This document shows positions 1 through 32,547 of a stretch of DNA of 64,000 nucleotides, piece by piece. Each line of letters opens with the position of its first letter. The first letter of the stretch is position 1. The stretch is from the sequence record MN871445.1; one strand, 5' to 3'. The notes beneath the pieces were generated by a model. That model was not told the DNA's origin, did no database searches, and saw only the letters and a program-made list of their open reading frames with translations. A program made the position numbers and the translations under genes.

Positions 1-906
1 CCCAGCGTCATCTTCTATGAAAAATTTGTCTTTTGACCCAATGACTATCGGGTTAATTATTCTTAGATTGCTGACATACGAGCAGTTAATCCCAATCCCA
101 AATGGGTTAGTGTAATTAATATTATTTAACCTTGGACGCTCTAATACGATATTTTCTAGTACGGTGGCTTTTCCACACACGGCGGTATCCGTAACTAAGA
201 ACGAATATTCCAACACCCTGTCCAGGGAATAAATATAATTACTGCCGGATACATCCCTTTTAGCAACTTTACGGAGTTGAGCTTGTTTAACTCCCTGATT
301 ATTTGCGCCCGGGACTAGTTTCTCAGATCTAATTTCGACCCAATCACCTACAGAAAACACGTCGGTAGTCAGTGTTATTTGATATCCCCCAGCCAAGGAG
401 TCCACTGCCAGACTATACCAGGTTGACGGGGCGGCACCGGCTAAGGTAAATCCTTGAACCAATGTAGCTGGAGCGTCAACTTCCCCCAACCCAGTAAAAG
501 TAATATAAGAATTGCTTTTAACGGATAAGGTTCCTGTCGGGGTGATCGCGGCATTAAAATGTATGTTGGTAAGTCCGGAAGCCAGGTATGTATTTATAGT
601 TGTGGATGTAGAAAATAATGAACTGTTGGCCGTCAGCTCTTTAACTAATTTCCATCGTTTTCCAAGGGTCGTAATTAAACAAGTAGTGGAATCATCTTGA
701 GTCTGAGTATCGGTTAAATCCGCTCGATATAAATATTTATTAAATAGCCACACTGCTTCACCATCAGTGGTTGGTTCTCTAGTTCTCAGAGTAGTAATAT
801 CAGCTATTTGTGGTATTTTATTATTTAGCGATATTTGTAAATTGCTACCGTCTGATGTCCCTATCAGACTCGCCCCTTTACCCATTTCACTTGAACCCAG
901 GTTTGA
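1..906 (-). CDS. Silent tailspike cassette A (headless, runs off the left edge; not in ORF track)
   Basis: Manual translation of the - strand from 906 is open to base 1: SNLGSSEMGKGASLIGTSDGSNLQISLNNKIPQIADITTLRTREPTTDGEAVWLFNKYLYRADLTDTQTQDDSTTCLITTLGKRWKLVK...FSVGDWVEIRSE...; in-frame TAA ~45 nt upstream and no start codon before the recombination site. Confidence 0.85.
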
Positions 907-912
907 AAGAAG
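835..912 (-). repeat. 78-bp inverted repeat copy of 6704-6781 (1 mismatch), containing site A
   Basis: Reverse complement CTTCTTTCAAACCTGGGTTCAAGTGAAATGGGTAA(A/C)GGGGCGAGTCTGATAGGGACATCAGACGGTAGCAATTTACAA matches 6704-6781. Confidence 0.95.
886..911 (-). other. Invertase recombination site A (hix/gix-like, 26 bp)
   Basis: Reverse complement TTCTTTCAAACC-TG-GGTTCAAGTGAA, identical to site C; AACC-NN-GGTT core as in hix/gix. Confidence 0.88.
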
Positions 913-929
913 CTCGATGTATACGGCCC

Positions 930-965
930 ATTTTATGCTGATAAAATTTTATTGAGGGGCCTATT
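930..965 (+). promoter_or_regulatory. Putative late promoter (TATG) and RBS of the 966 gene
   Basis: ATTTTATGC...GAGGGGC.TATTATG, similar in layout to the leader at 6542-6577. Confidence 0.45.
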
Positions 966-3515
966 ATGGCAGCGCTGCCGTCGTTGAAAAAAATATCGGA
1001 TCTGCCGACGTACGTATCCACATCGTCGCCATCCGTGGGAACGCTTTTATACACCGAGTCTGGTGTCGATTATAAACTGCCTGTTACTAAACTGTTGACC
1101 ACCGATAGTCTCAATCCGACACTTAATATCAACTCACCGTTGAACTATACCAGAAATAAAATTACAACCCCCATATCCAAAGCACTACAGGTATTGGATG
1201 TTACTGATGTCAGCATTTGGGAGTATGCTTCATTAATTACCACCAAAGGCAATGTTAATGATTATCAGACTTGGGACTGGACCCCAGCCATCCAGGCTGC
1301 CATTAACTACGTTATCTCATACCAATCCCAAACCGCGGTTAACTCAGGAATGTTTGGCGCTAAGCGTCTTTATATCCCTACCGGCGTATACCCGATTTAT
1401 TCGCAGCTAACCGTTACCAAATATGGTAGTAGTACGGGTAGTTTGGCGACGTCCCTCACTATTGTTGGTGATGGGATGACTTCGTCAATTATTCAACCGA
1501 TGACCGATGGTCAAATCGGTTTGCTGGCGACTAACTGTAAAATAAATGTGGATGGTGTCGGGATGCGTGCCGGGGCAGGTAACCAACAGCACTGGGTTCT
1601 CGGCCTAATCGACACGTGGGTCCCTGTTTTTCATTGCCATTTTAAATGTGTGGGTTCTTCAGGTGCCGCAAAGGGATTGGTACTTAATCTTTGTTTTGAT
1701 AGTACCTTTGAAGATGTGTTTGTTCAAAACATCGCCCCACTTAATTCCGGTGCTAGTGTGTCTTATGGGATTACTATTGAGACTTATACTGGCCCAGCTA
1801 ACGGCGGTACAACTGGCGATGGTAGTGGTGATGATTCCAATCAGTTAGTATTTATTAGGCCTACGGTGGAAACGGCGAACAGTGATAACACCATCATGTT
1901 CAACATCGCAGGTAAAAGCAGTACTTATCCGCATCACGCTATTAACGTCTATGGTGGCCATATTGAAACCCATAACCTTAAAGCGAAATGCTATAACCTG
2001 AAAAATGCTTTCAACGTTACTTTTAATGGTACCGTATTTTCTCAGAACGGTACTTCAGTAGATACGTTCTATCGTTTAGGTTATATTGAAAGTTGCTGGA
2101 ATTTACAATTTGTATCTTGCCGTCAAGTGACATCTAATCGATTGGCGGCTTATGATGCCGTTAACGATACCGTGATGATCAAAGTTACTGGCACTTCGAA
2201 AAACGTTAGATTCCTGAACACGCATTTTATCGGTCCTTATAATGACCTGTCTGCGTATAACCGCGGGATTAGTTGGCTTATCGATTCTACGGAAGCAGAT
2301 AAAACAACCCGCTCTTATATCCTGATTGGGTGTACTGTCGGGGTATATACAAATAAAGACATTACCTCAGAACTTCGGGTCACCGCGACTGACGTTTCCA
2401 GTCGAGAACACATCTTCCGCGTGGATGCATCTGGAAATTTGGTATTAGCCTATTCCAGTGATTCAACCGACACCACAGTACCGACCGATATCTTTGATAT
2501 CTCTAACGGCGGCGTCCTGCACACGAAAGATAACGTTTTGATTGGCTACAAAAACACGGCATCTGCAACGAGAACCCTCGGCTTTTACACGAATGGTGAT
2601 GGCGCTACCGTGATGGGTTCTATGGCGGTAGACAACGCGGGAAGGATGTACTTAACCGCGATGAGTGGGAGTAACCAATGGGTTCTTAACAGTACTGGTT
2701 TACAGCCGACCACTACGGCAACGCTTAACTTGGGTGCCTCAACGGCCACGTTAGCCGCGTCGTACGTTGTAAAAAGAATGTACACGGCAACTGTTGGTGA
2801 TTTTTATGGGTCAGGAAGTCCCGAGGGTGTGGTTAGTGCAGGGATTGGTTCGACATATCGTCGTACTGATGGCACGGTAAACACCTCGTTTTATGTGAAG
2901 GAATCTGGAACAGGTACTACGGGTTGGGTATCCACTGGTTCAGTCAGGCCATATGTTTCTGGCATGTTTGTGAGTCCAGGGAATCTGGTGTTGTCTGGAA
3001 ACTACATATTTAAATATCTGGGTACTGCTGCAGATATTACCGTCGCTCCAGTACCTGGAACACTGTGGAGTATGTTGACTCCGGGGGCTTCAGTAAAAAT
3101 AAAAGCCACGACAACTCAAACCACCACAACAGGAACCAATACAGCCCTAACTTGGGCATCCGCTACCACGGAGTATAATAGTAGCAGTATTTATACGATT
3201 GCTACTGCCGGGATTACCGTTCCAGTGGCCGGGATATATCGCATCGCCGGTAGGGTTGCTTTTGCTTCCAACAACACAGGTACCCGATCGGCCGGGGTAT
3301 TTATTAACGGCTCCTATTACGCGGGGTCTCAGGCTAGATTCGTTGCCAAATCCGGCGGGTATGCAACTACCGCTGATTACAATGATACCATGTCATTGGC
3401 GGCGGGAACAATCATCACGCTATCTGGATTCCAGGATTCTGGTGGGAACTTAGATACTGTTGCAACAGCCCCAGATGTATCTTTCCTGATAGTCAGTTTG
3501 GTAAGCTACGTTTAA
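966..3515 (+). CDS. Tailspike / depolymerase-like receptor-binding protein
   Basis: KKISDLPTY anchor motif, WTPAIQAAI...LYIPTGVY beta-helix cap, GSPEGVVSA...YVKESGTGTTGW motif, C1q-like C-terminal extension. Confidence 0.85.
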   Translation: MAALPSLKKISDLPTYVSTSSPSVGTLLYTESGVDYKLPVTKLLTTDSLNPTLNINSPLNYTRNKITTPISKALQVLDVTDVSIWEYASLITTKGNVNDYQTWDWTPAIQAAINYVISYQSQTAVNSGMFGAKRLYIPTGVYPIYSQLTVTKYGSSTGSLATSLTIVGDGMTSSIIQPMTDGQIGLLATNCKINVDGVGMRAGAGNQQHWVLGLIDTWVPVFHCHFKCVGSSGAAKGLVLNLCFDSTFEDVFVQNIAPLNSGASVSYGITIETYTGPANGGTTGDGSGDDSNQLVFIRPTVETANSDNTIMFNIAGKSSTYPHHAINVYGGHIETHNLKAKCYNLKNAFNVTFNGTVFSQNGTSVDTFYRLGYIESCWNLQFVSCRQVTSNRLAAYDAVNDTVMIKVTGTSKNVRFLNTHFIGPYNDLSAYNRGISWLIDSTEADKTTRSYILIGCTVGVYTNKDITSELRVTATDVSSREHIFRVDASGNLVLAYSSDSTDTTVPTDIFDISNGGVLHTKDNVLIGYKNTASATRTLGFYTNGDGATVMGSMAVDNAGRMYLTAMSGSNQWVLNSTGLQPTTTATLNLGASTATLAASYVVKRMYTATVGDFYGSGSPEGVVSAGIGSTYRRTDGTVNTSFYVKESGTGTTGWVSTGSVRPYVSGMFVSPGNLVLSGNYIFKYLGTAADITVAPVPGTLWSMLTPGASVKIKATTTQTTTTGTNTALTWASATTEYNSSSIYTIATAGITVPVAGIYRIAGRVAFASNNTGTRSAGVFINGSYYAGSQARFVAKSGGYATTADYNDTMSLAAGTIITLSGFQDSGGNLDTVATAPDVSFLIVSLVSYV

Positions 3516-3524
3516 GGAGTTACC

Positions 3525-4043
3525 ATGCCAGCAAGTATGTATGTAGTGGATACGTCCCTACCCTCTGTTGATTTGGTCTACGGGCTTATCAACAACGATA
3601 ACAACACAGTTTACAGTAAATCAACACTCAACCTGGCTACGCCAGAAACAAATACCAATCCCGCGATTGATCGTAATAGTAAAATCCTGGCTTCGAACAT
3701 CAAATACAGTAACAACACGCTGATGCTGTATTACGATAGATTGGATATTGCTGATGTATTGCGCATGGAGTTACCCATCATTTTGTCGAATGTAACTGAA
3801 ACCACGGTAGACCAAATGATGTGGTTTTTTAACTCCACGTACAAGATGGGATTGACCAAAGCTGAAATTAGTGCGTCGGCGGTTGATTTAACCGGCAACA
3901 CCACTACGTGGGCAATTGCGGATAATTCAATGGCGTGGGTGGGAAATCTACCATTAACCATTTTACCATCTGGGTACGGTCTTTTGATTGATGAAACAAA
4001 CAATCAATTGTTGGATGAGGATGGGTCATATTTGATTTTATAA
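3525..4043 (+). CDS. Virion structural/adaptor protein (paralog of 12190)
   Basis: LVYGLINNDN, YYDRLD, SMAWVGNLP and C-terminal LLDEDGSYLIL shared with 12190..12711. Confidence 0.7.
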   Translation: MPASMYVVDTSLPSVDLVYGLINNDNNTVYSKSTLNLATPETNTNPAIDRNSKILASNIKYSNNTLMLYYDRLDIADVLRMELPIILSNVTETTVDQMMWFFNSTYKMGLTKAEISASAVDLTGNTTTWAIADNSMAWVGNLPLTILPSGYGLLIDETNNQLLDEDGSYLIL

Positions 4044-4056
4044 ATAGGGCATAAAA

Positions 4057-4076
4057 GGGAGGGCGAAAGCCCTCCC
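4057..4076. terminator. Hairpin between convergent genes
   Basis: GGGAGGGC-GAAA-GCCCTCCC; TTTTATGCC follows on the - strand. Confidence 0.8.
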
Positions 4077-4109
4077 GATATGTTGTCTAGTAGAAAACAG
4101 GTATAAAAA

Positions 4110-5924
4110 TTAAAATATCCAACATCCCCGAGCAGAATTCCACATAAATTCATATATCCCGACATCGGTGATGGAAACCGAAGTTAATCCACTCCCACCA
4201 GGACCGTAAATGGTTTGTGCATTAGAGGTTTGTATGGTATACGTCGGGGCCGCCAATACTTTTTTAACTCGAATCATAAAGCCACTAGACAAACCACTGG
4301 CGTCTGGCAGCGTAAAAGTACTGGCTGAGGAAGCAACGGAATAATACAAATTACTTAATCCAGTTGTGGGGAAAGTATACCCCGAAGTAATTTCAGTGTA
4401 TGTGATATTGACCCCGGACAAATAATTCAAATATAATTTACCGGTACCCCACGTGAGCATTGGTAATGGATCTGCAGTACCACCACCGCCATAAATGCCA
4501 TTAGGGGTAATATTTAATCTGGCATAATTTTCACTAGTATATTTTACACTGTATCTAACTTGAGTAGTGGATGTTGCGGCTTGTTGAATTGGCTGTATAG
4601 CATCTAAATATCTGACCTCATTAAAGGTATAATTACTCCTATTTGGGTTAGAAGTTATCGCCACTGCCGCACTATCGCCCAATGAACCAGTAGCTACCGA
4701 GGAGGTGAATATGTCTTTTTCACCATCCCAAATGGTAGTCGATCCGGATTGGAACGCCATGCAATAGGCTACTCTAGTATAATTGCTATCGGAGGAATAG
4801 TTAAAATGGCTGTTTGAAGTGACTATCTTCCTAATAGACGCGGTTAATTTAATATTCGCATAGGCGTCGGTAAGCAATGTATCCGCGCTAGACCGCCAAC
4901 CATTGGCAAAAAACGTGGTTGCTAAAATTTCATGTATTTCAGACCCTCCTGGGGTATTAAACAGAATACCATTTTTACCGCAGGAATTTACATGATTACG
5001 CACCATTGAAGTTATTGTCGCTGTAGGACCAAATACGATACCATTTTCCCTACCTTCATAAGACTCAGAATTAATCATTCTGAAACTACCGCAATTGGCG
5101 TAGATATTATCTTCATTACTTCTACCAATCGATGAACTAAATAACATCCAGTCCACGGCGCTTTCCAAATACAGGCATGATTTCCAACACCACAAAACAC
5201 TACTATAATTTAAAAATCCCATGTTTCTTTTAACGCCGGCATATACCCCATAACCAGAAAAATTAGATATTGTCGAATTTATAAATTGTAGGGATGTGGC
5301 GTATTGGCTTGCGGCGGTTAGATAAATACAATTCAATTGTCCCGTCGTGGGGGGTGTTGGACTATATATTGAACCGGTAGTAGTCCAGTCCCCGACTAAT
5401 CGACAGCCATCAAAAGTAGGTGATGCTGCCGCCGACACGGTGAACATATTCCCAACAGTGCCGGGGTAGGGCTTGATATAACTTTCTGAACGCTTACCGG
5501 CCCCTTCAAAATAAACACTACTAGTAATATTAAGATTACCCACTAAATAAGTAGTGTCCTGTTTTAATACTATTTTTCCGGTTCCAGCGGCATTAATTGC
5601 ATTTTGAAAAGGTATGGTATCATCGGATACGCCATCGCACTTCACGCCAAACCAATCCGGATTTATCTTAACTACATTCGAACGTTTCCATCGTTTACCC
5701 CCAACAGTGACTATTACGGTTCCACCATTGTCAGTAGAAGTCGTATCCGCAGCATCATAATAAAATTCACCGCCGCCAACTGGGGCGATAGTAATAGCCC
5801 ATCCCGGGTAATATGCGACAACCTCAATTTTTTGTCCGGAGGTGGTCGGCTCTATCGTCCGTAAGGTTGAAATATCGGAACACCGACCAATATATTTATA
5901 TCCATCACTTGAACCCAGGTTTGA
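4110..5924 (-). CDS. Silent tailspike cassette B (pectate-lyase-like beta-helix), lacking its own N-terminus
   Basis: Begins at site B with SNLGSSDGYKYIG; DNGGTVIVTVGGKRWKR and WFGVKCDGVSDDTIPFQNAINAA motifs; the called TTG start has no RBS. Confidence 0.85.
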   Translation of the reverse strand, partial: SNLGSSDGYKYIGRCSDISTLRTIEPTTSGQKIEVVAYYPGWAITIAPVGGGEFYYDAADTTSTDNGGTVIVTVGGKRWKRSNVVKINPDWFGVKCDGVSDDTIPFQNAINAAGTGKIVLKQDTTYLVGNLNITSSVYFEGAGKRSESYIKPYPGTVGNMFTVSAAASPTFDGCRLVGDWTTTGSIYSPTPPTTGQLNCIYLTAASQYATSLQFINSTISNFSGYGVYAGVKRNMGFLNYSSVLWCWKSCLYLESAVDWMLFSSSIGRSNEDNIYANCGSFRMINSESYEGRENGIVFGPTATITSMVRNHVNSCGKNGILFNTPGGSEIHEILATTFFANGWRSSADTLLTDAYANIKLTASIRKIVTSNSHFNYSSDSNYTRVAYCMAFQSGSTTIWDGEKDIFTSSVATGSLGDSAAVAITSNPNRSNYTFNEVRYLDAIQPIQQAATSTTQVRYSVKYTSENYARLNITPNGIYGGGGTADPLPMLTWGTGKLYLNYLSGVNITYTEITSGYTFPTTGLSNLYYSVASSASTFTLPDASGLSSGFMIRVKKVLAAPTYTIQTSNAQTIYGPGGSGLTSVSITDVGIYEFMWNSARGCWIF

Positions 5925-5929
5925 GGGAA
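5904..5929 (-). other. Invertase recombination site B
   Basis: Reverse complement TTCCCTCAAACC-TG-GGTTCAAGTGAT, 23/26 identical to site C. Confidence 0.88.
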
Positions 5930-5962
5930 TATATGTCGACACCAACCCTCAAGGACATAAAA

Positions 5963-6514
5963 ATGATCTACGGTTATGCCCGAGTTTCTACTCAACATCA
6001 GGATACTACACTACAACTTATTGCGCTTCAGGCAGCTGGCTGCGATGAAATTCGCGAAGAAAAAGCGTCTGGTAGAAGTAGAAACAGGCCCGTATTGAAG
6101 AAACTGCTAACCGATCTTCAATCCGGCGATGAATTAGTATTGTGGAAAATAGACAGGATGGGTAGGAATGTATTACATGCCTTAACCTGGTTGGCTGAGC
6201 TGCAAGATAAGAATGTAAACCTCAGGTCGATCACCGATGCCATCGATATGCGCACTGCTTCTGGCCGTTATAGTTTTCGCAATATTTTGAATGCCGCACA
6301 GTACGAATCGGACGTAAATAGCGAAAGAACCTTGGCTGGACTAGCTGCAGCCAGAGCACAAGGTAGGGTGGGTGGAAGAAAACCAACAATGACCGAACCC
6401 GTTTTGGAGAAAGCACGGGATTTGATAAATGCTGGAAACAATTACCGCGAAGTAGCTGAAGCCATCGGAGTGACCACAAAAACGATATACAAATATTTTC
6501 CAGTCAATTCATAA
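5963..6514 (+). CDS. Serine recombinase, Hin/Gin/Pin DNA-invertase family (183 aa)
   Basis: MIYGYARVST (catalytic Ser9), WKIDRMGR, ERTLAGLAAARAQGRVGGR, C-terminal HTH; AAGGA RBS at 5951; the upstream ORF-track extension is spurious. Confidence 0.95.
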   Translation: MIYGYARVSTQHQDTTLQLIALQAAGCDEIREEKASGRSRNRPVLKKLLTDLQSGDELVLWKIDRMGRNVLHALTWLAELQDKNVNLRSITDAIDMRTASGRYSFRNILNAAQYESDVNSERTLAGLAAARAQGRVGGRKPTMTEPVLEKARDLINAGNNYREVAEAIGVTTKTIYKYFPVNS

Positions 6515-6520
6515 TTTTTG

Positions 6521-6543
6521 ATGAGGCGGCTTGGCCGCCTCAT
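6521..6543 (+). terminator. Hairpin after invertase gene
   Basis: ATGAGGCGGC-TTG-GCCGCCTCAT followed by TTTATGC. Confidence 0.75.
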
Positions 6544-6577
6544 TTTATGCTTATCATTTTTTACAAGAGGGGCTATC
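6542..6577 (+). promoter_or_regulatory. Putative late promoter (TATG) and RBS of the constant tailspike head
   Basis: ATTTTATGC...AGAGGGGCTATCATG; TATG is the phiKZ late-promoter consensus. Confidence 0.45.
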
Positions 6578-8269
6578 ATGGCCAACAGAGCGATTACGAA
6601 GAAAATTAGTGCTTTGCCGACCTACGCACTGAACAACAATAACGGCAATTTACTGTATAGTGAGGGGGGTGCAAATTACCAATTTCCGTTGAGTAATATT
6701 GCCCTTCTTTCAAACCTGGGTTCAAGTGAAATGGGTAACGGGGCGAGTCTGATAGGGACATCAGACGGTAGCAATTTACAACAAATTGCAACAGTAGTAA
6801 GTGACCAACTTATAACCAACCCACAAATTGTTGCTGGCGACAACATGTCCGTTTTAGACCGAATCAAAGTCAAAGGTCAGTATGACATCAACCCGGCACC
6901 TCAGGAACCCCAAGCTGCAGTAGGTATTACTTTTGGAGGGCAGAATAATACCGGAACCATTATGTTAAATAGTCGAGGTGGAATTCAAACCTCGGTCACA
7001 GTAGATGGTTTAACTACAGCGAAAGGATTACACTACCCCTATTCGGAAGGAATGGGTTATTGGCATGGGGCCTATCAAGATACCTTAGTAAAATTCCCTA
7101 TAGACGGGATGGCCGATGATAATATCACATACGGTATATTGTTCTCACATGACGAAAAAACCAACACTCCCAGGATGTTTGCGGTATCTCCACAGTTAAC
7201 AGAACGGGTTAACTATACAGATCCAGGTAGATATCGCTGGGGCGGCGCAAACTTTACAGCAGTCCGTGAATTGGCCCAGCTCGATGCAATTGGTAGAAGT
7301 TCAGCCAATTCATACGACACTTGGTTCACATTGGATAGTTCCAATCCCAATTATATTAATTTCGTATCTTTAACAAATCCAAATTCTGTTACTGGTGGTA
7401 ATTTTTCATGTATTTTCAGTATAGGCAATTATAGTGCTGATAAAGTTACAACCTACATACTGGACGTAACAATTCCATCGGCGATTACCGCATTAACTCA
7501 ATATGACGTTAATAAATACATTAGATTTACGGGGATTGGTGGAGGTTCACTATATCACTATACGGACGCTACTTCTCAAACAAAACCTCGGATTGGTTTT
7601 GTTCAAAACACCACCACCGGGGTACTTGATTTTTATATTCAGGTACCAGCACACGCAACCTATTTTGGTTGTAAATGCTTAAATTCAGGCAATCCTGCTT
7701 TATTTGACTGGAGATGGAGAAATTACACCGGGGGTACGCAATTATCGGGTCTTGCCGGTAGTCCTCCTGCAGGTGTTGTTTGGGGGAACACGGCATATAC
7801 TGGAAGTAATTATCGAACAGTGATGTTAAATGACGGTAGTTTATTTTCAGTACCTGAGGGCTATGCTGTCTTGAGATGTCACATCAATGGCCCAGCCGGG
7901 GTGATTAACGCCGCGCCATTTAAAGCATATGTGTCATCATTTTGTTATGCGACTAATTTCGACAGTAAAATAGCCAATGTGACTTGCGCCATACCTAGTT
8001 TAAACTGGTATATCACCGGAGCAGATCTAGCCACAGATATGCCTTGGCAGATTAGACTCCCCCACGATCTAACTGATGTCGAATCGTACCGATGTGTTGT
8101 GTCTAGTACTGATACAACAAATCACACATTTATGTTTGCTGTCAAAAAAGTGAATACTTCCGGCACGTTAGATTCCAGTAATAACGTAATTTTGACCAAG
8201 TCCCTAAGTACTAGTCCAGTACAAATAAGTAGTGTATCGTGGATTGATGTACTGGTTAAACTACCATAA
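6578..8269 (+). CDS. Currently assembled switchable receptor-binding protein: constant head (aa 1-46) plus cassette C (563 aa)
   Basis: MANRAITKKISALPTY anchor; site C at codons 43-51; GASLIG neck; GAGG RBS before ATG 6578. Confidence 0.85.
   Translation: MANRAITKKISALPTYALNNNNGNLLYSEGGANYQFPLSNIALLSNLGSSEMGNGASLIGTSDGSNLQQIATVVSDQLITNPQIVAGDNMSVLDRIKVKGQYDINPAPQEPQAAVGITFGGQNNTGTIMLNSRGGIQTSVTVDGLTTAKGLHYPYSEGMGYWHGAYQDTLVKFPIDGMADDNITYGILFSHDEKTNTPRMFAVSPQLTERVNYTDPGRYRWGGANFTAVRELAQLDAIGRSSANSYDTWFTLDSSNPNYINFVSLTNPNSVTGGNFSCIFSIGNYSADKVTTYILDVTIPSAITALTQYDVNKYIRFTGIGGGSLYHYTDATSQTKPRIGFVQNTTTGVLDFYIQVPAHATYFGCKCLNSGNPALFDWRWRNYTGGTQLSGLAGSPPAGVVWGNTAYTGSNYRTVMLNDGSLFSVPEGYAVLRCHINGPAGVINAAPFKAYVSSFCYATNFDSKIANVTCAIPSLNWYITGADLATDMPWQIRLPHDLTDVESYRCVVSSTDTTNHTFMFAVKKVNTSGTLDSSNNVILTKSLSTSPVQISSVSWIDVLVKLP
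6705..6730 (+). other. Invertase recombination site C (inverted relative to A and B)
   Basis: TTCTTTCAAACC-TG-GGTTCAAGTGAA, read in frame as S-N-L-G-S-S. Confidence 0.9.
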
Positions 8270-8284
8270 GTCGTAGGTGAGAAC

Positions 8285-10012
8285 ATGAATTATTATTATA
8301 TCGATCCAACCGCCACGTCCTCAGGTAATGGGACAATAACATCACCACATCAATCGTTTACTGCGCTGATCTCCGCAGGTATAATTCATCCATGCACTAT
8401 TTATTTGAAACGAGGGACTACGTTATGTGAAAACGCCAACTTTGGTGTATCTGGTCTGGCCAATACTACTGGGATTATGTCGTATATAGATTGCTACGGT
8501 TCCGGGCCTTTACCAATATGGTTGAATAAAAAATACGTCACCGTGGGAACCGCATTAGATGGATATACTTATAGCGGTATGCATATTACCGCACGAAATA
8601 CACAAAACATCACCATCCAAAATATTGAATTTTATACCAGGAATGACTTGACTGTGGTTGACAATAACCCCTCTTCATTCTTATGGTTGGAATTGCCAGC
8701 GGCCACTACCGAGATATCCGCTAACGTATGGGTTAACCAATGTAAGTTCCATGGTGACCCGATTATCCGTAGTGGAAAACACACGTGGTATGAATCGGTC
8801 ATTAATATAAAAGTCAATGCAAGTGCAACTAATAGGGTTAATTATTTTGGCGTACGGTATTGTGACTTTTATAACGTATCAAGGCCCATCAATATTGTCG
8901 GCAATCATTGGACGGCGGACGATATTACTAGCAATACAACTGGTACTTATTATTCCAGGGGTGTAAAAGTAGAACACTGTTCTATGGTCGGGATTTCAAA
9001 AGGCGGTTGTCAGTTTGCCGGAGTGGAAAGTAAAAACTCCGCATATGTCGTGGATGTTGACCAATCGGTTATGCGCGATATCAGCTATTCCAAATACCGA
9101 TGGGATAACGCGTTGGAAAATTCTGATACGTTGTATGCTGACGCCGGATTCTGGACTTATAGATGTAATCGGGTGATGCTTGAAAATATCCGTGGTGGTG
9201 GGATGTGGCCTTCTGTGACGGACAACGAATTAATTGATTTCGATTACCTCAGCTGGGATTGTGTTGCACGATACATTATCGGGTTCAACAACGCAGCATC
9301 AATATTGTTTATGGGGCATTCTTCTACCGCTTCTCAAGGCGGTTCTAGGGCAGCATATTCAGGTTATTCCTCAACGTATACTCCAGCGCAATGGTTTTAT
9401 GAGCGTAGAAATGGTCAGGGTAATAACATTGTTGAGTTTTGCTATTTCTTCAACGATGGGATTCAAACCGTGCCCGCCCCCTCCACTGGATATGGGGATT
9501 GCGCAAATATCCGTTCCAGGAATATAAATTATTCAAATATTGTTAGGAATTGTGTATTCATTGATACCGTGTCTACTACGATGAAATATTTGGTTTCTAA
9601 TAACAATCTTGCACTTACTGCTGGAGAGCCATACCGTCTATCTATCGAAAACTGCGTTTACTATTCCAGATACAACAATGGAATTGACCTAATAACTCCA
9701 CTCGCAAACACAACCACGTATAGTGCAACAGCGACGAAGATGACTAACATAATTGCTATGTCTGCCGCATGGGCAAGTACTAATTATGCGTCTATTCTTA
9801 GCACTTTAAGTGCTAACTGCACCACTAATAATGCTCGGATAGTCGACCCCCTATTTCGCTTCGTACCAGCCCAACCTCCAGTATCGGTGAAATCGGCATT
9901 AAAGATATCCGTGACCTCCGATTCACCCTGTATTTCTTCCGGCATATCCAGCGGTAATTTGGACATCGTGGGGAAAACGTGCTCCGATATTTTTTGGAGA
10001 TCCTTAAGTTGA
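8285..10012 (+). CDS. Beta-helix polysaccharide lyase/depolymerase-like protein without virion-anchor module
   Basis: YYIDPTATSSGNGTITSP N-terminus, IQNIEF and VRNCVF beta-helix rungs, DPLF near C-terminus. Confidence 0.65.
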   Translation: MNYYYIDPTATSSGNGTITSPHQSFTALISAGIIHPCTIYLKRGTTLCENANFGVSGLANTTGIMSYIDCYGSGPLPIWLNKKYVTVGTALDGYTYSGMHITARNTQNITIQNIEFYTRNDLTVVDNNPSSFLWLELPAATTEISANVWVNQCKFHGDPIIRSGKHTWYESVINIKVNASATNRVNYFGVRYCDFYNVSRPINIVGNHWTADDITSNTTGTYYSRGVKVEHCSMVGISKGGCQFAGVESKNSAYVVDVDQSVMRDISYSKYRWDNALENSDTLYADAGFWTYRCNRVMLENIRGGGMWPSVTDNELIDFDYLSWDCVARYIIGFNNAASILFMGHSSTASQGGSRAAYSGYSSTYTPAQWFYERRNGQGNNIVEFCYFFNDGIQTVPAPSTGYGDCANIRSRNINYSNIVRNCVFIDTVSTTMKYLVSNNNLALTAGEPYRLSIENCVYYSRYNNGIDLITPLANTTTYSATATKMTNIIAMSAAWASTNYASILSTLSANCTTNNARIVDPLFRFVPAQPPVSVKSALKISVTSDSPCISSGISSGNLDIVGKTCSDIFWRSLS

Positions 10013-12189: not shown

Positions 12190-12711
12190 ATGTCCTCAAA
12201 CTTCTATATTGTCGACTTATCTTTACCGGCCACCGAACTCGTTTATGGTCTTATCAACAATGATAACGATACGAATTACGGGCCAGACAAAGTAACCCTC
12301 GGTGAAGTATCTGCCGTCCCAAGCGAAACTCCACGCAACAGTACGTTGACCCTTTCGAGGGTCAACTATCCACTCATGACTCTCGATATTTTCTATGACC
12401 GGCTAACCTTTGCCGAAGTCATTGATTCTGATTACCCTATCGTTATAAGTCGTGAGGCTGGAGATACTACCACCTGGGATTTAATCAATGGGGTTAATGA
12501 AGGGCTGGGGTTTGGGTTGGTGCCGGCTGATATCGTTAACGCTGTTCTCGATCTGGGTGACCCCAACGTTATTCTTGAGGCAGGTGAAAAGTCCTATGCG
12601 TGGCTTGGGGAAATACCTGTATTGTATTTGGAACCCGGAGAAATCGCCTTCCAGATAAATGACGGTGATTTGCTTTATCTTGATGACGATACCATCATGG
12701 TGGGAAATTAA
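12190..12711 (+). CDS. Virion structural/adaptor protein (paralog of 3525)
   Basis: LVYGLINNDN, FYDRL, SYAWLGEIP, acidic/hydrophobic C-terminus. Confidence 0.7.
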   Translation: MSSNFYIVDLSLPATELVYGLINNDNDTNYGPDKVTLGEVSAVPSETPRNSTLTLSRVNYPLMTLDIFYDRLTFAEVIDSDYPIVISREAGDTTTWDLINGVNEGLGFGLVPADIVNAVLDLGDPNVILEAGEKSYAWLGEIPVLYLEPGEIAFQINDGDLLYLDDDTIMVGN

Positions 12712-12713
12712 TT

Positions 12714-15191
12714 ATGTCTACTAAAGTAGTGAAAAAGAAACTCACGGACCTGCCCGTGTACGTGCAGACTACTGCTAGTTCGGGTTCCCTTCATTATCGT
12801 GAAGGAAATGTCGATTACCAATTTCCGATCACTTCTATACTTACGCCTATATCTCTCGGGGCCGTAGATGGTTACAAGTATATTGGTCAAGTAACATCAT
12901 TTGCAGCACTTAGAAGCCTATCTCCGACCGCCGAAGGCGCTAGAATTAAACTACGCGAATATGCGGTTGGTACTGGTATGGGTGGTGGGGATTTCATCGG
13001 ACATATCGGAACAGCAACCGATGACTCCGGCACTATTGCGGTTGGGACGGGTTATTACTGGAAACGTGTAATTGATGTCCCAGGCGTAATTGATGCCACT
13101 TGGTTTGGTGTGACCAATGATGGTGTTTCTTCGGCACAGGCCATTAGTTTGGCGTTGGACTATATTTCTGTAACTGGGGGGATTTTGAGATTCCCTTCGG
13201 GGGAAATAAACTGGGGGACCCTGAGAAAAGTCATTAACTATTCAACCTCGTTGGTGTCTTTTACCATAGAAGGTATGGGTGACTCTACTCTATTTTCTTA
13301 TGATGATGTCCCACCACCCACATTACCCGCGGGCAGTAATTGGGTAAAAGAATCCCCCTTATTGTCATTTATTGGCAATAACGGGACCCAATGCATTCCA
13401 CCGATTACTTTACAAAAATTCAGAATGGATTACTCTCGCCAGGTAAATAAGGGAGGGAATACATTAGAGACTTTGGGGATTACACACCCCACGCCATATT
13501 CCCTGGGGGTTTGGGGATTTTACTTCATGTATGCTGACTCGCCCTACATTAATCGGGTTAAAATGTCGAACATATATGGTGATGGTATTTTCATCAGAAA
13601 ATCATTTACCCCGCGCGTTCAAGATTGTCACTTTTATAATGTCTCCGCTGGGAACATTATTGCAAGAACTGATGGGAACATGGCGTCAGATTCTAACGGA
13701 GGTGCTGTCTTCATATGGGCGTGCGTTGGTGGCGTTGTGGATGGGTGTGTTGCGTGGAACCAACGTTTATATCAAGTGCACGTCAATTCGACCGACAACG
13801 GTACGGATGTTTATGGTACTTTGTGTGGGTATATTGGATTTTGGACCGAATATCCGTGGGACCAAAACCTGACCGCGACTACTCCGGAAACGGCACCGCC
13901 TCGAGTTAACGGGTTTATTACGACGGCGAACGTTACGACCAATAATTACGATAATGAAGCCAAAGGTTGCACGATTAGCAATTGTACTGTTTATGGTTAC
14001 ACTATCGGAATTAAATCCGAGGGTCAGAACGAAACCAATATCACCAATAACTTGGTTTTAAACTGCTATCTTCCTCTTTTCCCGGCAAGTACTCGAGCGA
14101 CGATTTCCAATAACTTTACGGACATGCTTTATTGTGATAATAGGAAATGCCCTCAAGGTGGTTATGAGAGTATTCGTGCTCATTTAGTTAGCCACAATTA
14201 TTCTACTTATGATGATGGGATGCGTCGGGGAGTAGAATTCAAAGGTAATAAATGCTATTGTACGAATTACCCAGCAATCCGCTCTAACCGTGCAGGTACT
14301 CTGTTTGATTCCAACATGTTTAGATTCTCTCGGGGAACGGCATTTCTATTCGATGTTACGATCAATACTTTGAAAAAAGGAGTAGTTCTGCGAGACAATA
14401 CCTTTTTCATCGATTCTACCATTTCTGGGGTAACTACTTCAAATGTGGCCTATCAAGATGGTATTGTATTTGCCGGTAATAGGTTTGTCAACAACTCGTC
14501 GCAGGTGGTTACTATTGCCTTTAGGAACAGCAGTACCGATGTTCGCGTAGATGATAATACGTTTGAAGGTGCGTTTTTCTTTGCTTTACAATGTTCGGGA
14601 ACCGTGGAAAAAAATATTTTTGATGTTAACACGGCCGTTGGTGGGGTCTACCAAACTACCGTTGTTTTCCAGGCCACGGCTAGGGGGACCATCCGGAACA
14701 ACACCTTCCGACTTAATACGGCAGTAACGACCGCACAAATATCATTAGGTGCGGATAACATCCGATTTGATGGTAATGAAATCTCGTTTAAAGATACCGG
14801 TGCTGGAACTGCGTTGGCGCTTATTTATTCCGAGTCTAGTGCAGCGGGATTGGTACTTCAAAACAATAAAATATTAACTAACCCTTATGCTTTACCTATG
14901 TTTTATTTGTATGGGTCCCATTATCCGACCATCATTGGGAATAGCAATCCACTTGGTGCTGGCATCCGCTACGGAAGTCAGATTTACGCACCGATTACTT
15001 TGGATAGAAATTTATTTTCCACGCCATTTTCTAACCTTACTACGGAGAAAAACAATGCAGCTAATTTTTCTTCTAAGGCGATATCGTATCAGGGATTAAA
15101 AATGCCATACTTATTCCCGGTAGCTGGAGGGGCGGAAGGGGTAGTTTATACTCCAACTGGATGGAAAACATACGGTAGCATCTCAGCATAA
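12714..15191 (+). CDS. Tailspike / depolymerase-like protein
   Basis: KKLTDLPVY anchor, LGAVDGYKYIG, DDSGTI, WFGV..DG, GEINW beta-helix features. Confidence 0.85.
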   Translation: MSTKVVKKKLTDLPVYVQTTASSGSLHYREGNVDYQFPITSILTPISLGAVDGYKYIGQVTSFAALRSLSPTAEGARIKLREYAVGTGMGGGDFIGHIGTATDDSGTIAVGTGYYWKRVIDVPGVIDATWFGVTNDGVSSAQAISLALDYISVTGGILRFPSGEINWGTLRKVINYSTSLVSFTIEGMGDSTLFSYDDVPPPTLPAGSNWVKESPLLSFIGNNGTQCIPPITLQKFRMDYSRQVNKGGNTLETLGITHPTPYSLGVWGFYFMYADSPYINRVKMSNIYGDGIFIRKSFTPRVQDCHFYNVSAGNIIARTDGNMASDSNGGAVFIWACVGGVVDGCVAWNQRLYQVHVNSTDNGTDVYGTLCGYIGFWTEYPWDQNLTATTPETAPPRVNGFITTANVTTNNYDNEAKGCTISNCTVYGYTIGIKSEGQNETNITNNLVLNCYLPLFPASTRATISNNFTDMLYCDNRKCPQGGYESIRAHLVSHNYSTYDDGMRRGVEFKGNKCYCTNYPAIRSNRAGTLFDSNMFRFSRGTAFLFDVTINTLKKGVVLRDNTFFIDSTISGVTTSNVAYQDGIVFAGNRFVNNSSQVVTIAFRNSSTDVRVDDNTFEGAFFFALQCSGTVEKNIFDVNTAVGGVYQTTVVFQATARGTIRNNTFRLNTAVTTAQISLGADNIRFDGNEISFKDTGAGTALALIYSESSAAGLVLQNNKILTNPYALPMFYLYGSHYPTIIGNSNPLGAGIRYGSQIYAPITLDRNLFSTPFSNLTTEKNNAANFSSKAISYQGLKMPYLFPVAGGAEGVVYTPTGWKTYGSISA

Positions 15192-32459: not shown

Positions 32460-32469
32460 CACCATAAAA

Positions 32470-32489
32470 GGGAGGGTGAAAGCCCTCCC
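32470..32489 (+). terminator. Hairpin
   Basis: GGGAGGGT-GAAA-GCCCTCCC then AATATG. Confidence 0.75.
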
Positions 32490-32547
32490 AATATGTTGTT
32501 TCTTTTTTATAGTCATGATTTAAAATATAATTCCGAGGAAAAAAAGA

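Follow-up and report, generated by a model that had tools for sequence, protein, structure and literature searches.

A probable multiple DNA-inversion system that joins two tailspike heads to alternative bodies in the Klebsiella jumbo phage KpHz_2

The window analysed here is a stretch of 64,000 nucleotides (nt) that is 100% identical to positions 186001-250000 of MN871445.1, a record of 270,429 bp labelled 'UNVERIFIED_ORG: Serratia phage KpHz_2', with Klebsiella pneumoniae as host and without annotation. Near its left end lies a gene for a serine DNA invertase, together with tailspike open reading frames (ORFs), some complete and some lacking the N-terminal virion anchor (the head), and the candidate crossover sites at which heads and bodies meet (Table 1). 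A 24-kb stretch of the KpHz_2 backbone is 95.8% identical, over 76% of the stretch, to Klebsiella phage vB_KvM-Eowyn (hereafter Eowyn), and Townsend et al. reported KpHz_2 as the closest relative of Eowyn (PMC8006926). Eowynvirus is assigned to Chimalliviridae, and one of its members is described as obligately lytic and as encoding a nuclear shell protein and PhuZ (PMC13757433). Judged by sequence, KpHz_2 is an Eowynvirus-like member of this family with a genome above 200 kb, and genus membership predicts that it forms a nucleus. A preliminary description of the window, made from its letters alone, had called the phage phiKZ-like, lytic and jumbo, which holds at the level of the family. We also refer to the 16 kb to the left of the window as L003; a window coordinate is the L003 coordinate minus 16000.

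Table 1. Features of the KpHz_2 inversion locus and of one relic in Eowyn. Coordinates are those of the window unless L003, L002 (Eowyn) or the record is named.
Feature	Coordinates	Strand	Remarks
Serine DNA invertase, 183 aa, PinL/Gin family	5963-6514	+	Pfam Resolvase, HTH_7
Intrinsic-terminator-like hairpin, 3' of invertase gene	6520-6544	+	
Candidate crossover site A	886-911	-	TTCTTTCAAACCTGGGTTCAAGTGAA, core TG
Candidate crossover site B	5904-5929	-	TTCCCTCAAACCTGGGTTCAAGTGAT, core TG; 33 bp from invertase start
Candidate crossover site C	6705-6730	+	TTCTTTCAAACCTGGGTTCAAGTGAA, core TG
Conserved block upstream of the head gene	6534-6577	+	Shared promoter/5' leader or candidate cis element
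Head C, 44-aa N-terminal virion anchor	6578-6709	+	Start codon; GAGGGG resembling a ribosome-binding site
Body C, presently fused to head C	6710-8269	+	Product 563 aa
Cassette A, headless tailspike body	1-911 (partial); whole, record 184903-186912 (L003 14903-16912)	-	669 codons
Cassette B, headless beta-helix body	4110-5929	-	604 aa from the S of SNLGSS
Complete 849-aa tailspike	966-3515	+	Own anchor, without crossover site
172-aa DUF7941 virion protein	3525-4043	+	
Two-way terminator-like hairpin	4057-4076	.	Between DUF7941 gene and end of cassette B
CATTTTATGCTTATCA, copy before head C	6541-6556		164 bp before C
CATTTTATGCTTATCA, copy on head-904 side	L003 6735-6750	-	12 bp from X3
CATTTTATGCTTATCA, third copy	929-944		2 mismatches; 13 bp from site A, before the 849-aa spike
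Candidate crossover site X1	L003 2496-2521	+	TTCCCATAAACCTCCGTTCAAGTGAA, core TC
Candidate crossover site X2	L003 6366-6391	-	TTCGCGAAAACCTCCGTTCAAGTGAA, core TC
Candidate crossover site X3	L003 6765-6790	+	TTCCCATAAACCTCCGTTCAAGTGAC, core TC
TC trio with second head and two headless bodies	L003 2496-8485 (record 172496-178485)		7.5-13.5 kb left of window
Eowyn cassette relic	L002 10010-10180 (LR881104.1)	-	Part annotated as a 44-aa hypothetical protein

The invertase contains a Resolvase domain (E 3.6e-36) plus HTH_7, and its best solved relative is Mu Gin (4m6f/3uj3; E 2e-44 over residues 1-181), in agreement with the Hin/Gin-type enzyme of the preliminary description. S9, R7, D64, R65, R68 and the remaining invariant columns are all kept. 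The closest relatives overall are enterobacterial prophage proteins (66-71% identity), and the closest in phages are the Pin-like invertases of phi80, HK225, mEp237, SKA5 and Omnitron (~62%). A tblastn search of the KpHz_2 record returned a single invertase locus, and an exact look-up of the protein had the GenBank record as its sole match. We considered the residues of helix E as a sign of Fis independence and rejected them: the unusual residues are common to the whole PinL subfamily and are therefore uninformative on this point.

A 20-mer, TCAAACCTGGGTTCAAGTGA, occurs in three exact copies, at 887-906 (-), 5905-5924 (-) and 6710-6729 (+), against 0.01 expected from shuffles, none of which reached three. 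These copies lie in sites A, B and C. Compared over 26 nt, A matches C at every position, and B departs from both at three outer positions. The homology of A and C reaches a 78-nt inverted repeat (835-912 and 6704-6781; 99%), and the stretch common to B and C is only ~25 nt. Half-site symmetry, read directly from the letters, is 8 of 12 positions, here and in the second class of sites described below. The sites thus appear to be of the 26-bp invertase type, with two imperfect inverted 12-bp halves, a 2-bp centre and partners in inverted orientation. The hix sites are likewise 26 bp long, and their enhancer lies inside hin, ~100 bp from one of them (PMC3798978); the distance of site B from the invertase start is compatible with an enhancer in the 5' part of the gene. 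At A, B and C alike, S-N-L-G-S-S is encoded in the frame of the ORF downstream. The three sites, their shared core and the common reading frame had all been proposed in the preliminary description, and all stand.

Head C, which follows the pattern (K)K-I/L-x-D/A-L-P-x-Y...L-L-Y-x-E-x-G-x-x-Y-x-x-P common to six other complete spikes of the cluster, is the sole head in the window that carries a TG site. Cassettes A and B lack the anchor that is present in all seven complete spikes. Cassette A extends leftward out of the window by 1.1 kb. Its frame begins 14 codons ahead of site A, behind a stop and without a start codon, and has an in-frame ATG shortly after the site. For cassette B, the only starts are TTG and GTG, 5-6 codons before the site and badly spaced, 0-3 nt after GAGGG; in profiles of full-length tail fibres, its residues 8-137 correspond to positions ~80-260, and hence its N-terminal part is missing. 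Two headless ORFs leading from A and B, a current product of 563 aa and a product of 648 aa for head C with body B were therefore described correctly from the start, whereas to give head C the 'only start codon' was too strong, since the 849-aa spike, the DUF7941 gene and the ATG of cassette A also lie there. Cassette A carries K1-lyase Rider and C domains, and from residue 33 onward it shares 67% identity with tailspikes of ~50-kb Klebsiella siphoviruses. Cassette B is 60% identical to a phiKp_32 protein, and body C shows 58% identity with tail proteins from Klebsiella phages of ~300 kb.

The preliminary description had called for a genome-wide scan for sites and had suggested that more cassettes might lie to the left. 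We scanned the whole 270-kb record piecewise, with the pieces unjoined, and found three more 26-mers (X1, X2 and X3), roughly 9.5-13.5 kb left of the window and with TC at the centre; the scan found no other site in a spike frame beyond these six. All six fall within 26 kb and within two mismatches of one 18-mer (expected 0), and all are in frame with a tailspike body, the TC sites encoding N-L-R-S-S. The TG and TC trios also differ at the base after the central dinucleotide, and they are ~10 kb apart with ordinary spike genes in between. X2 lies ~103 codons into a complete 875-aa spike (L003 4071-6698, -), downstream of the anchor and a Tail_spike_N domain. The bodies behind X1 and X3 (508 and 570 aa) have frames that open 7-10 codons before the site, behind a stop and without a start. 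The X1-X2 segment (3.85 kb) holds two convergent bodies, with the head outside; the X2-X3 segment (375 bp) contains the head and its upstream block only; and the homology of X2 to its partner sites spans 30-37 nt at 84-87%. Additional cassettes are thus present, as suggested, but they are tied to a second head (head-904) and to a second class of site.

Body X1 shares 75% identity with the last 508 aa of RaK2 gp528 (1113 aa), and body X3 shares 42% with the last 566 aa of the 810-aa vB_VIPKPNMC05 tail fibre. The silent bodies therefore correspond to C-terminal portions of longer receptor-binding proteins elsewhere, and their relatives suggest that the bodies set capsule-type specificity.

Repeats with an identical 12-2-12 architecture, encoding the same motif, accompany related invertases. 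SKA5 and Omnitron, whose invertases are among the 62% relatives, have inverted repeats, TTACCACAAACCTTGGTTTGGGAGAAG and a partner, with one inside a tail-fibre gene and the second 66-86 bp from the invertase start. In L018, a headless 542-aa body adjoining a 71%-identical invertase starts at TTCGCTAAAAGGTGGGTTCAAGCGAA, reading ...KVGSSELPGASL. A classical segment in L009 (IMG/VR 3300011613_000018) is flanked by TTCGCGTAAACCTGGGTTCAGGCGAA and TTCGCTCAAACCTGGGTTCAAGTGAA; its invertase (48% identical) lies 44 bp from TTCGCGTAAACCTGGGTTCAGGCGAA, and TTCGCTCAAACCTGGGTTCAAGTGAA reads ...ALRSNLGSSEEG at the head/body junction of a Klebsiella-type depolymerase. The human-gut contig L030 (UOIW01000386) has the site and body of L009 on a different head. 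The inner site positions match those beside related invertases in L007, L006, L009 and L018, and in unrelated phages one such repeat always lies 33-86 bp from the invertase gene. In the pinL neighbourhoods of phi80 and mEp237, the annotated inverted repeat resembles a hairpin and not a crossover site, and we set it aside.

We conclude that KpHz_2 probably has a multiple DNA-inversion system made up of one Gin/Pin-family serine invertase and six sites placed in the coding sequence for the linker between tailspike head and body. We infer that the invertase is the catalyst, that the two classes of site are insulated and that switching occurs within populations. Recombination between B and C would flip 0.8 kb (invertase, terminator, upstream block and head) and join the head to body B. 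Recombination between A and C would flip 5.8 kb and join the head to body A; this event, already part of the preliminary description, would also drag along the whole 849-aa spike gene, which with the DUF7941 gene is passive cargo of the segment. An X1-X2 inversion would turn the two convergent bodies around, and an X2-X3 inversion would flip the head alone. Presumably the one invertase serves the TC sites too, from ~15 kb away. Serine recombinases need identical central dinucleotides to religate, and the TG and TC trios are hence expected to be insulated from each other; each head would sample its own three bodies, and therefore up to nine spike combinations could arise per lineage.

Contigs of relatives from Logan and the European Nucleotide Archive (ENA) differ in orientation at the sites. 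They came from members of the 90% cluster of the invertase: L037 (an 83-kb contig from SRR14739079), L041 (SRR14739080), L038 (SRR28229723) and L039/L040 (ERZ24875813, ERR13599000). The fused proteins cited here were taken unaltered from databases or from the ORFs of the contigs. L038 and L039/L040 are in the KpHz_2 state: a headless 639-aa ORF, beginning VLTYIP/SNLGSS/DSGKGASLVGLEAGG... in L038 and L039, lies to the left of the invertase on the minus strand, and on the right the head continues into a different body. In L037 and L041, the 827-bp segment running from site through invertase and head to site is inverted relative to both flanks, as compared with L038/L039. Thus, L037 9943-10769 matches L038 1915-2740 in the same orientation (98.9%), whereas L037 10750-12681 matches L038 1935-4 (99.1%) and L037 1-5580 matches L038 12096-6517 (98.7%), both reversed; the match blocks overlap by 20-21 nt at the sites, and it is there that the orientation changes. 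L037 encodes a 677-aa protein, MANRAITKK...SNIALL/SNLGSS/DSGKGASLVGLEAGG..., which is the head joined to the body that is headless in L038/L039 (99.7% identity between the fused and headless bodies), and a different body is headless in L037. The kind of junction predicted in the preliminary description therefore exists in nature. As a separate observation, the head-fused gene of L039 (10619-12560), intact at 646 aa in L038, is split by one break into ORFs of 278 and 364 aa.

For the TC class, searching proteins with the silent body X1 led to P0138, a 613-aa protein with a Tail_spike_N domain that consists of head-904 joined at the site to body X1 (99% identity); an AlphaFold model of it has a mean predicted local distance difference test score (pLDDT) of 55 and a predicted template-modelling score (pTM) of 0.38, a quality too low for fold comparison. 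In the contigs that encode P0138 (L042 and L043), the X1-X2 segment is inverted relative to KpHz_2: L043 6136-6530 matches L003 6756-6362, immediately next to it comes the complete body X1, oppositely oriented and with a 23-nt overlap at the site, and beyond body X1 the match continues to L003 2526-2055. The silenced body in L042/L043 is reduced to remnants by at least two deletions, one site has 2 mismatches and the other 7, and there is no X3 cassette; from its sequence, this phage appears to be a locked, decaying derivative. Comparison of isolates and contigs thus documents natural inversion between B and C and between X1 and X2.

Purifying selection acts on the invertase and on silent bodies alike. 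The invertase genes of KpHz_2 and KpGz_1 differ by 12 synonymous changes and 1 non-synonymous change, those of KpHz_2 and the metagenome contig L015 (JGI 3300045375 Ga0490018_002396) by 18 and 1, and those of KpHz_2 and L037 by 72 and 6; in the last comparison, synonymous divergence (dS) is ~1.07 and the ratio of non-synonymous to synonymous divergence (dN/dS) is 0.013, within an overall range of 0.013-0.023. Body X1 of KpHz_2 and its homologue behind X3' in KpGz_1, both headless, are 79% identical in DNA and 90% in protein, and their dN/dS of 0.022 over 508 codons compares with 0.029 for a complete 591-aa spike.

The sites and their neighbourhood are also conserved. Between KpHz_2 and L037, the longest stretches free of differences are 6567-6624, covering upstream block and head start, and 6692-6726, around site C. 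Site B has one difference, and 6534-6624, the best-conserved DNA outside the sites, also has one, at an invertase synonymous divergence of ~1. Within each genome, both TG sites share one synonymous variant, AGT in KpHz_2, KpGz_1 and L015 and AGC in L037, L038 and L039. The upstream block contains a 16-mer, CATTTTATGCTTATCA, that occurs at only three places in 80 kb, 12-164 bp from a crossover site, and is absent beside other complete spikes; it may serve as a common promoter or as a cis element for inversion.

Eowyn, which is absent among the 40 best matches to the invertase, presents the opposite picture. It is without cassette B; its head C is identical, and homology stops right after site C, which has two synonymous changes. 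The place of site A is taken by GTCTTTCAAACCCGAGTTCAAACGAA, which has five mismatches, and behind it ~56 codons of a truncated pectate-lyase-type body survive as a relic.

Exchange at the sites is apparent from the B slot, where KpHz_2 (604 aa from the site), KpGz_1 (a 514-aa ORF) and L015 (a 647-aa ORF) each have a different intact body, with identity resuming exactly at the site. KpHz_2 and KpGz_1 share the invertase module at 98.6% identity (compared over window 5902-10000), whereas their backbones are only ~79-87% identical (window 20000-44000), which argues that the module moved between lineages. In L015, whose invertase is 99% identical, the sequence after the terminator continues inside a homologue of the 825-aa spike encoded at window 12714-15191. 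This homologue is thus headless, head C is absent along with several genes, and the junction lies away from the crossover sites. This arrangement is either one deletion or a mis-join.

How often the system works is a separate matter. One possibility, which we consider somewhat less likely than not, is programmed bet-hedging, in which a resident invertase keeps reshuffling two anchors among six bodies in every stock, in two insulated classes. If so, one plaque-pure lysate would hold up to nine receptor-binding configurations, and the invertase would act on nucleus-enclosed DNA, implying either that recombination proceeds without Fis or that the phage supplies a cis element of its own; the conserved block beside head C, head-904 and site A would be a candidate for the latter. 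Several observations weigh against continuing inversion. Every orientation difference seen is fixed between isolates or contigs, and L037 and L038 also have different bodies at the C position and differ in the spike gene that follows, so they are related strains and not one clone before and after a single clean flip. The protein collection held no fusion of the head to body A or body B of KpHz_2 itself. Scans with the TG 20-mer (IMG/VR and metagenome contigs) and with a TC 18-mer (IMG/VR and genome contigs) gave matches by chance or to unrelated phages and no alternative KpHz_2 junction, L009 and L030 being the useful comparators; lineage-specific 26-mers of invertase and head had no match in IMG/VR. 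The TC sites are ~15 kb from the invertase gene, and codons 1-60 of the invertase, compared with L037, show no extra synonymous conservation of the kind sought as an enhancer signature. Classical invertases need host Fis, HU and supercoiled DNA, and in the nucleus-forming Chimalliviridae host Fis may not reach the phage DNA. The fixed differences, the lack of an enhancer signature and the family of the phage would favour a fossil or a system acting over evolutionary time, in which inversions are rare (in mixed infections or an ancestor) and each isolate is effectively locked in one state, as the decayed L042/L043 and Eowyn loci would be. We nevertheless regard this as unlikely, since an invertase held at a dN/dS of ~0.013 across a synonymous divergence of ~1, and sites conserved amid diverged surroundings, speak against it, and since the silent bodies are intact and under purifying selection, which implies that they are expressed often enough for selection to act.

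Two further explanations dispense with the invertase. Short inverted repeats could also undergo homologous recombination, by phage or host enzymes acting on repeats of 26-78 bp, with the invertase as a bystander. The 78 nt shared by A and C at 99% would allow this, tailspike modules are widely exchanged at conserved linkers, and the bodies of near-identical phages differ exactly at the site. However, the ~25 nt common to B and C and the 30-37 nt at 84-87% of X2 are short for homologous exchange, the repeats have a dyad 12-2-12 form with one copy always close to an invertase gene in unrelated phages, the invertase is under strong selection, and cassette and site have decayed where no close invertase is seen; we consider this explanation very improbable. 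It is scarcely credible that there is no switch at all, the 'sites' being conserved linker DNA, A and B being translated alone and the invertase being an unrelated selfish gene. The motif L-x-x-N-L-x-S-S-E-x-G is indeed common in tailspikes (L009, L030, RaK2 gp528), and gene callers placed an ATG start after the site for A and a GTG before the site for B. Yet the exact identity over 18-26 nt covers synonymous positions and is relaxed in Eowyn, where no close invertase is seen, the bodies lack the anchor carried by all seven complete spikes, and one and the same body has a head in one isolate and none in another, the switch of orientation falling at the sites.

Several neighbouring features deserve mention. 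Even a degenerate site is lacking behind the head of the 849-aa spike, where the closest window mismatches at 12 of 26 positions. Between body X1 and body-904, and after A and B, there are terminator hairpins but no ORF. A GC-rich hairpin, GGGAGGGCTTTCGCCCTCCC, recurs between tail genes as a two-way terminator-like element (window 4057-4076 and ~32463-32499; L003 4042-4061 and 8746-8765); it is a probable cause of breaks in short-read assemblies, as several Logan contigs stop next to it. There are at least five paralogous small DUF7941 'virion structural' genes, each after a spike gene (window 3525-4043 and ~12190-12711; L003 8790-9380, 11167-11688 and 11700-12359), and in L039 the copy beside the B slot is reversed relative to its KpHz_2 counterpart, a further rearrangement. 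A 10/12 match to a sigma-70 promoter lies just outside site B (window 5867-5896, +), pointing to the invertase gene; the sigma-70 promoter scan as a whole was at chance (13 found, 14.3 expected), and this phage family has its own RNA polymerases, for which such a scan is ill suited.

Invertase-driven switching of receptor-binding proteins is textbook biology for the temperate phages Mu and P1. As in Mu (Gin, G segment) and P1 (Cin, C segment), KpHz_2 has a small serine invertase, a 26-bp site adjoining the invertase gene, and 26-bp sites at the junction between the constant N-terminal and variable C-terminal parts of the receptor-binding protein; the X1-X2 layout is exactly that of the Mu G segment, with two convergent bodies inside and the head outside. 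Unlike Mu and P1, which are temperate and have two sites, KpHz_2 is by genus a lytic, nucleus-forming jumbo phage with six sites, and its bodies are beta-helix, depolymerase-type tailspikes without U/U'-like assembly genes. The head lies inside the B-C, A-C and X2-X3 segments, and the invertase also moves with B-C and A-C, so the inside-out layout claimed in the preliminary description holds for these two.

Other systems share single elements. Min of plasmid p15B is one Gin-family invertase with more than two sites and many alternative tail-fibre C-termini; KpHz_2 likewise has a single invertase and more than two crossover sites, but these fall into two dinucleotide classes, each tied to its own head, ~10 kb apart. 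As in Salmonella Hin/H, the invertase lies inside a segment of ~1 kb bounded by 26-bp sites and moves with the expression signals of its neighbour, but Hin flips a promoter only, whereas KpHz_2 would flip a start codon and 44 codons, fused in frame on both sides. In the R64 shufflon, several cassettes supply C-termini to one constant adhesin N-terminus, and the recombinase, Rci, is a tyrosine recombinase. The only recombinase at the KpHz_2 locus is a serine invertase and the sites are different; hence 'shufflon', the term first applied to the locus, does not fit in the strict sense and is an analogy only. Campylobacter fetus sap has a small invertible element with expression signals between opposed silent cassettes, and larger inversions reach further cassettes; sap, however, is bacterial and relies on homologous recombination via long conserved 5' regions, without a dedicated invertase. 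L009 and L030 share with KpHz_2 the TG site (24 of 26 positions identical to C) and SNLGSS at the head/body junction of a depolymerase-type tailspike, but these are small non-jumbo contigs with the classical layout (head and invertase outside, two bodies inside) and an invertase 48% identical. Our full-text literature search found no description of an invertase-switched tailspike for a jumbo phage, a virulent phage, Chimalliviridae or capsule-depolymerase tailspikes, and a search by phage names returned no relevant paper. A 2026 preprint on Klebsiella receptor-binding proteins attributes the breadth of Eowynvirus to accumulated depolymerases and does not mention inversion.

The comparison also suggests an origin. 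The classical order, head-site/body1> <body2/site-invertase, and that of KpHz_2, <bodyB/siteB-invertase-head-siteC/bodyC>, contain the same parts, circularly permuted. A headless body with its site and an invertase, a portable pair such as those of L018 and L009, may have landed upstream of a resident spike gene that already bore the linker. Eowyn, judged from its sequence, would represent the resident spike gene without the portable pair. Inserted upstream of any resident spike gene with the linker motif, such a portable two-part module could make a switch of that gene.

The proposed system raises a question of mechanism, as an enzyme family that depends on Fis, HU and supercoiling would act on a genome shut in a protein shell. 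If it operates within stocks, the silent headless ORFs of such phages would be usable receptor-binding modules, and host range would be the property of a population of genotypes and not of the deposited sequence, with consequences for the typing, comparison and choice of Klebsiella phages.

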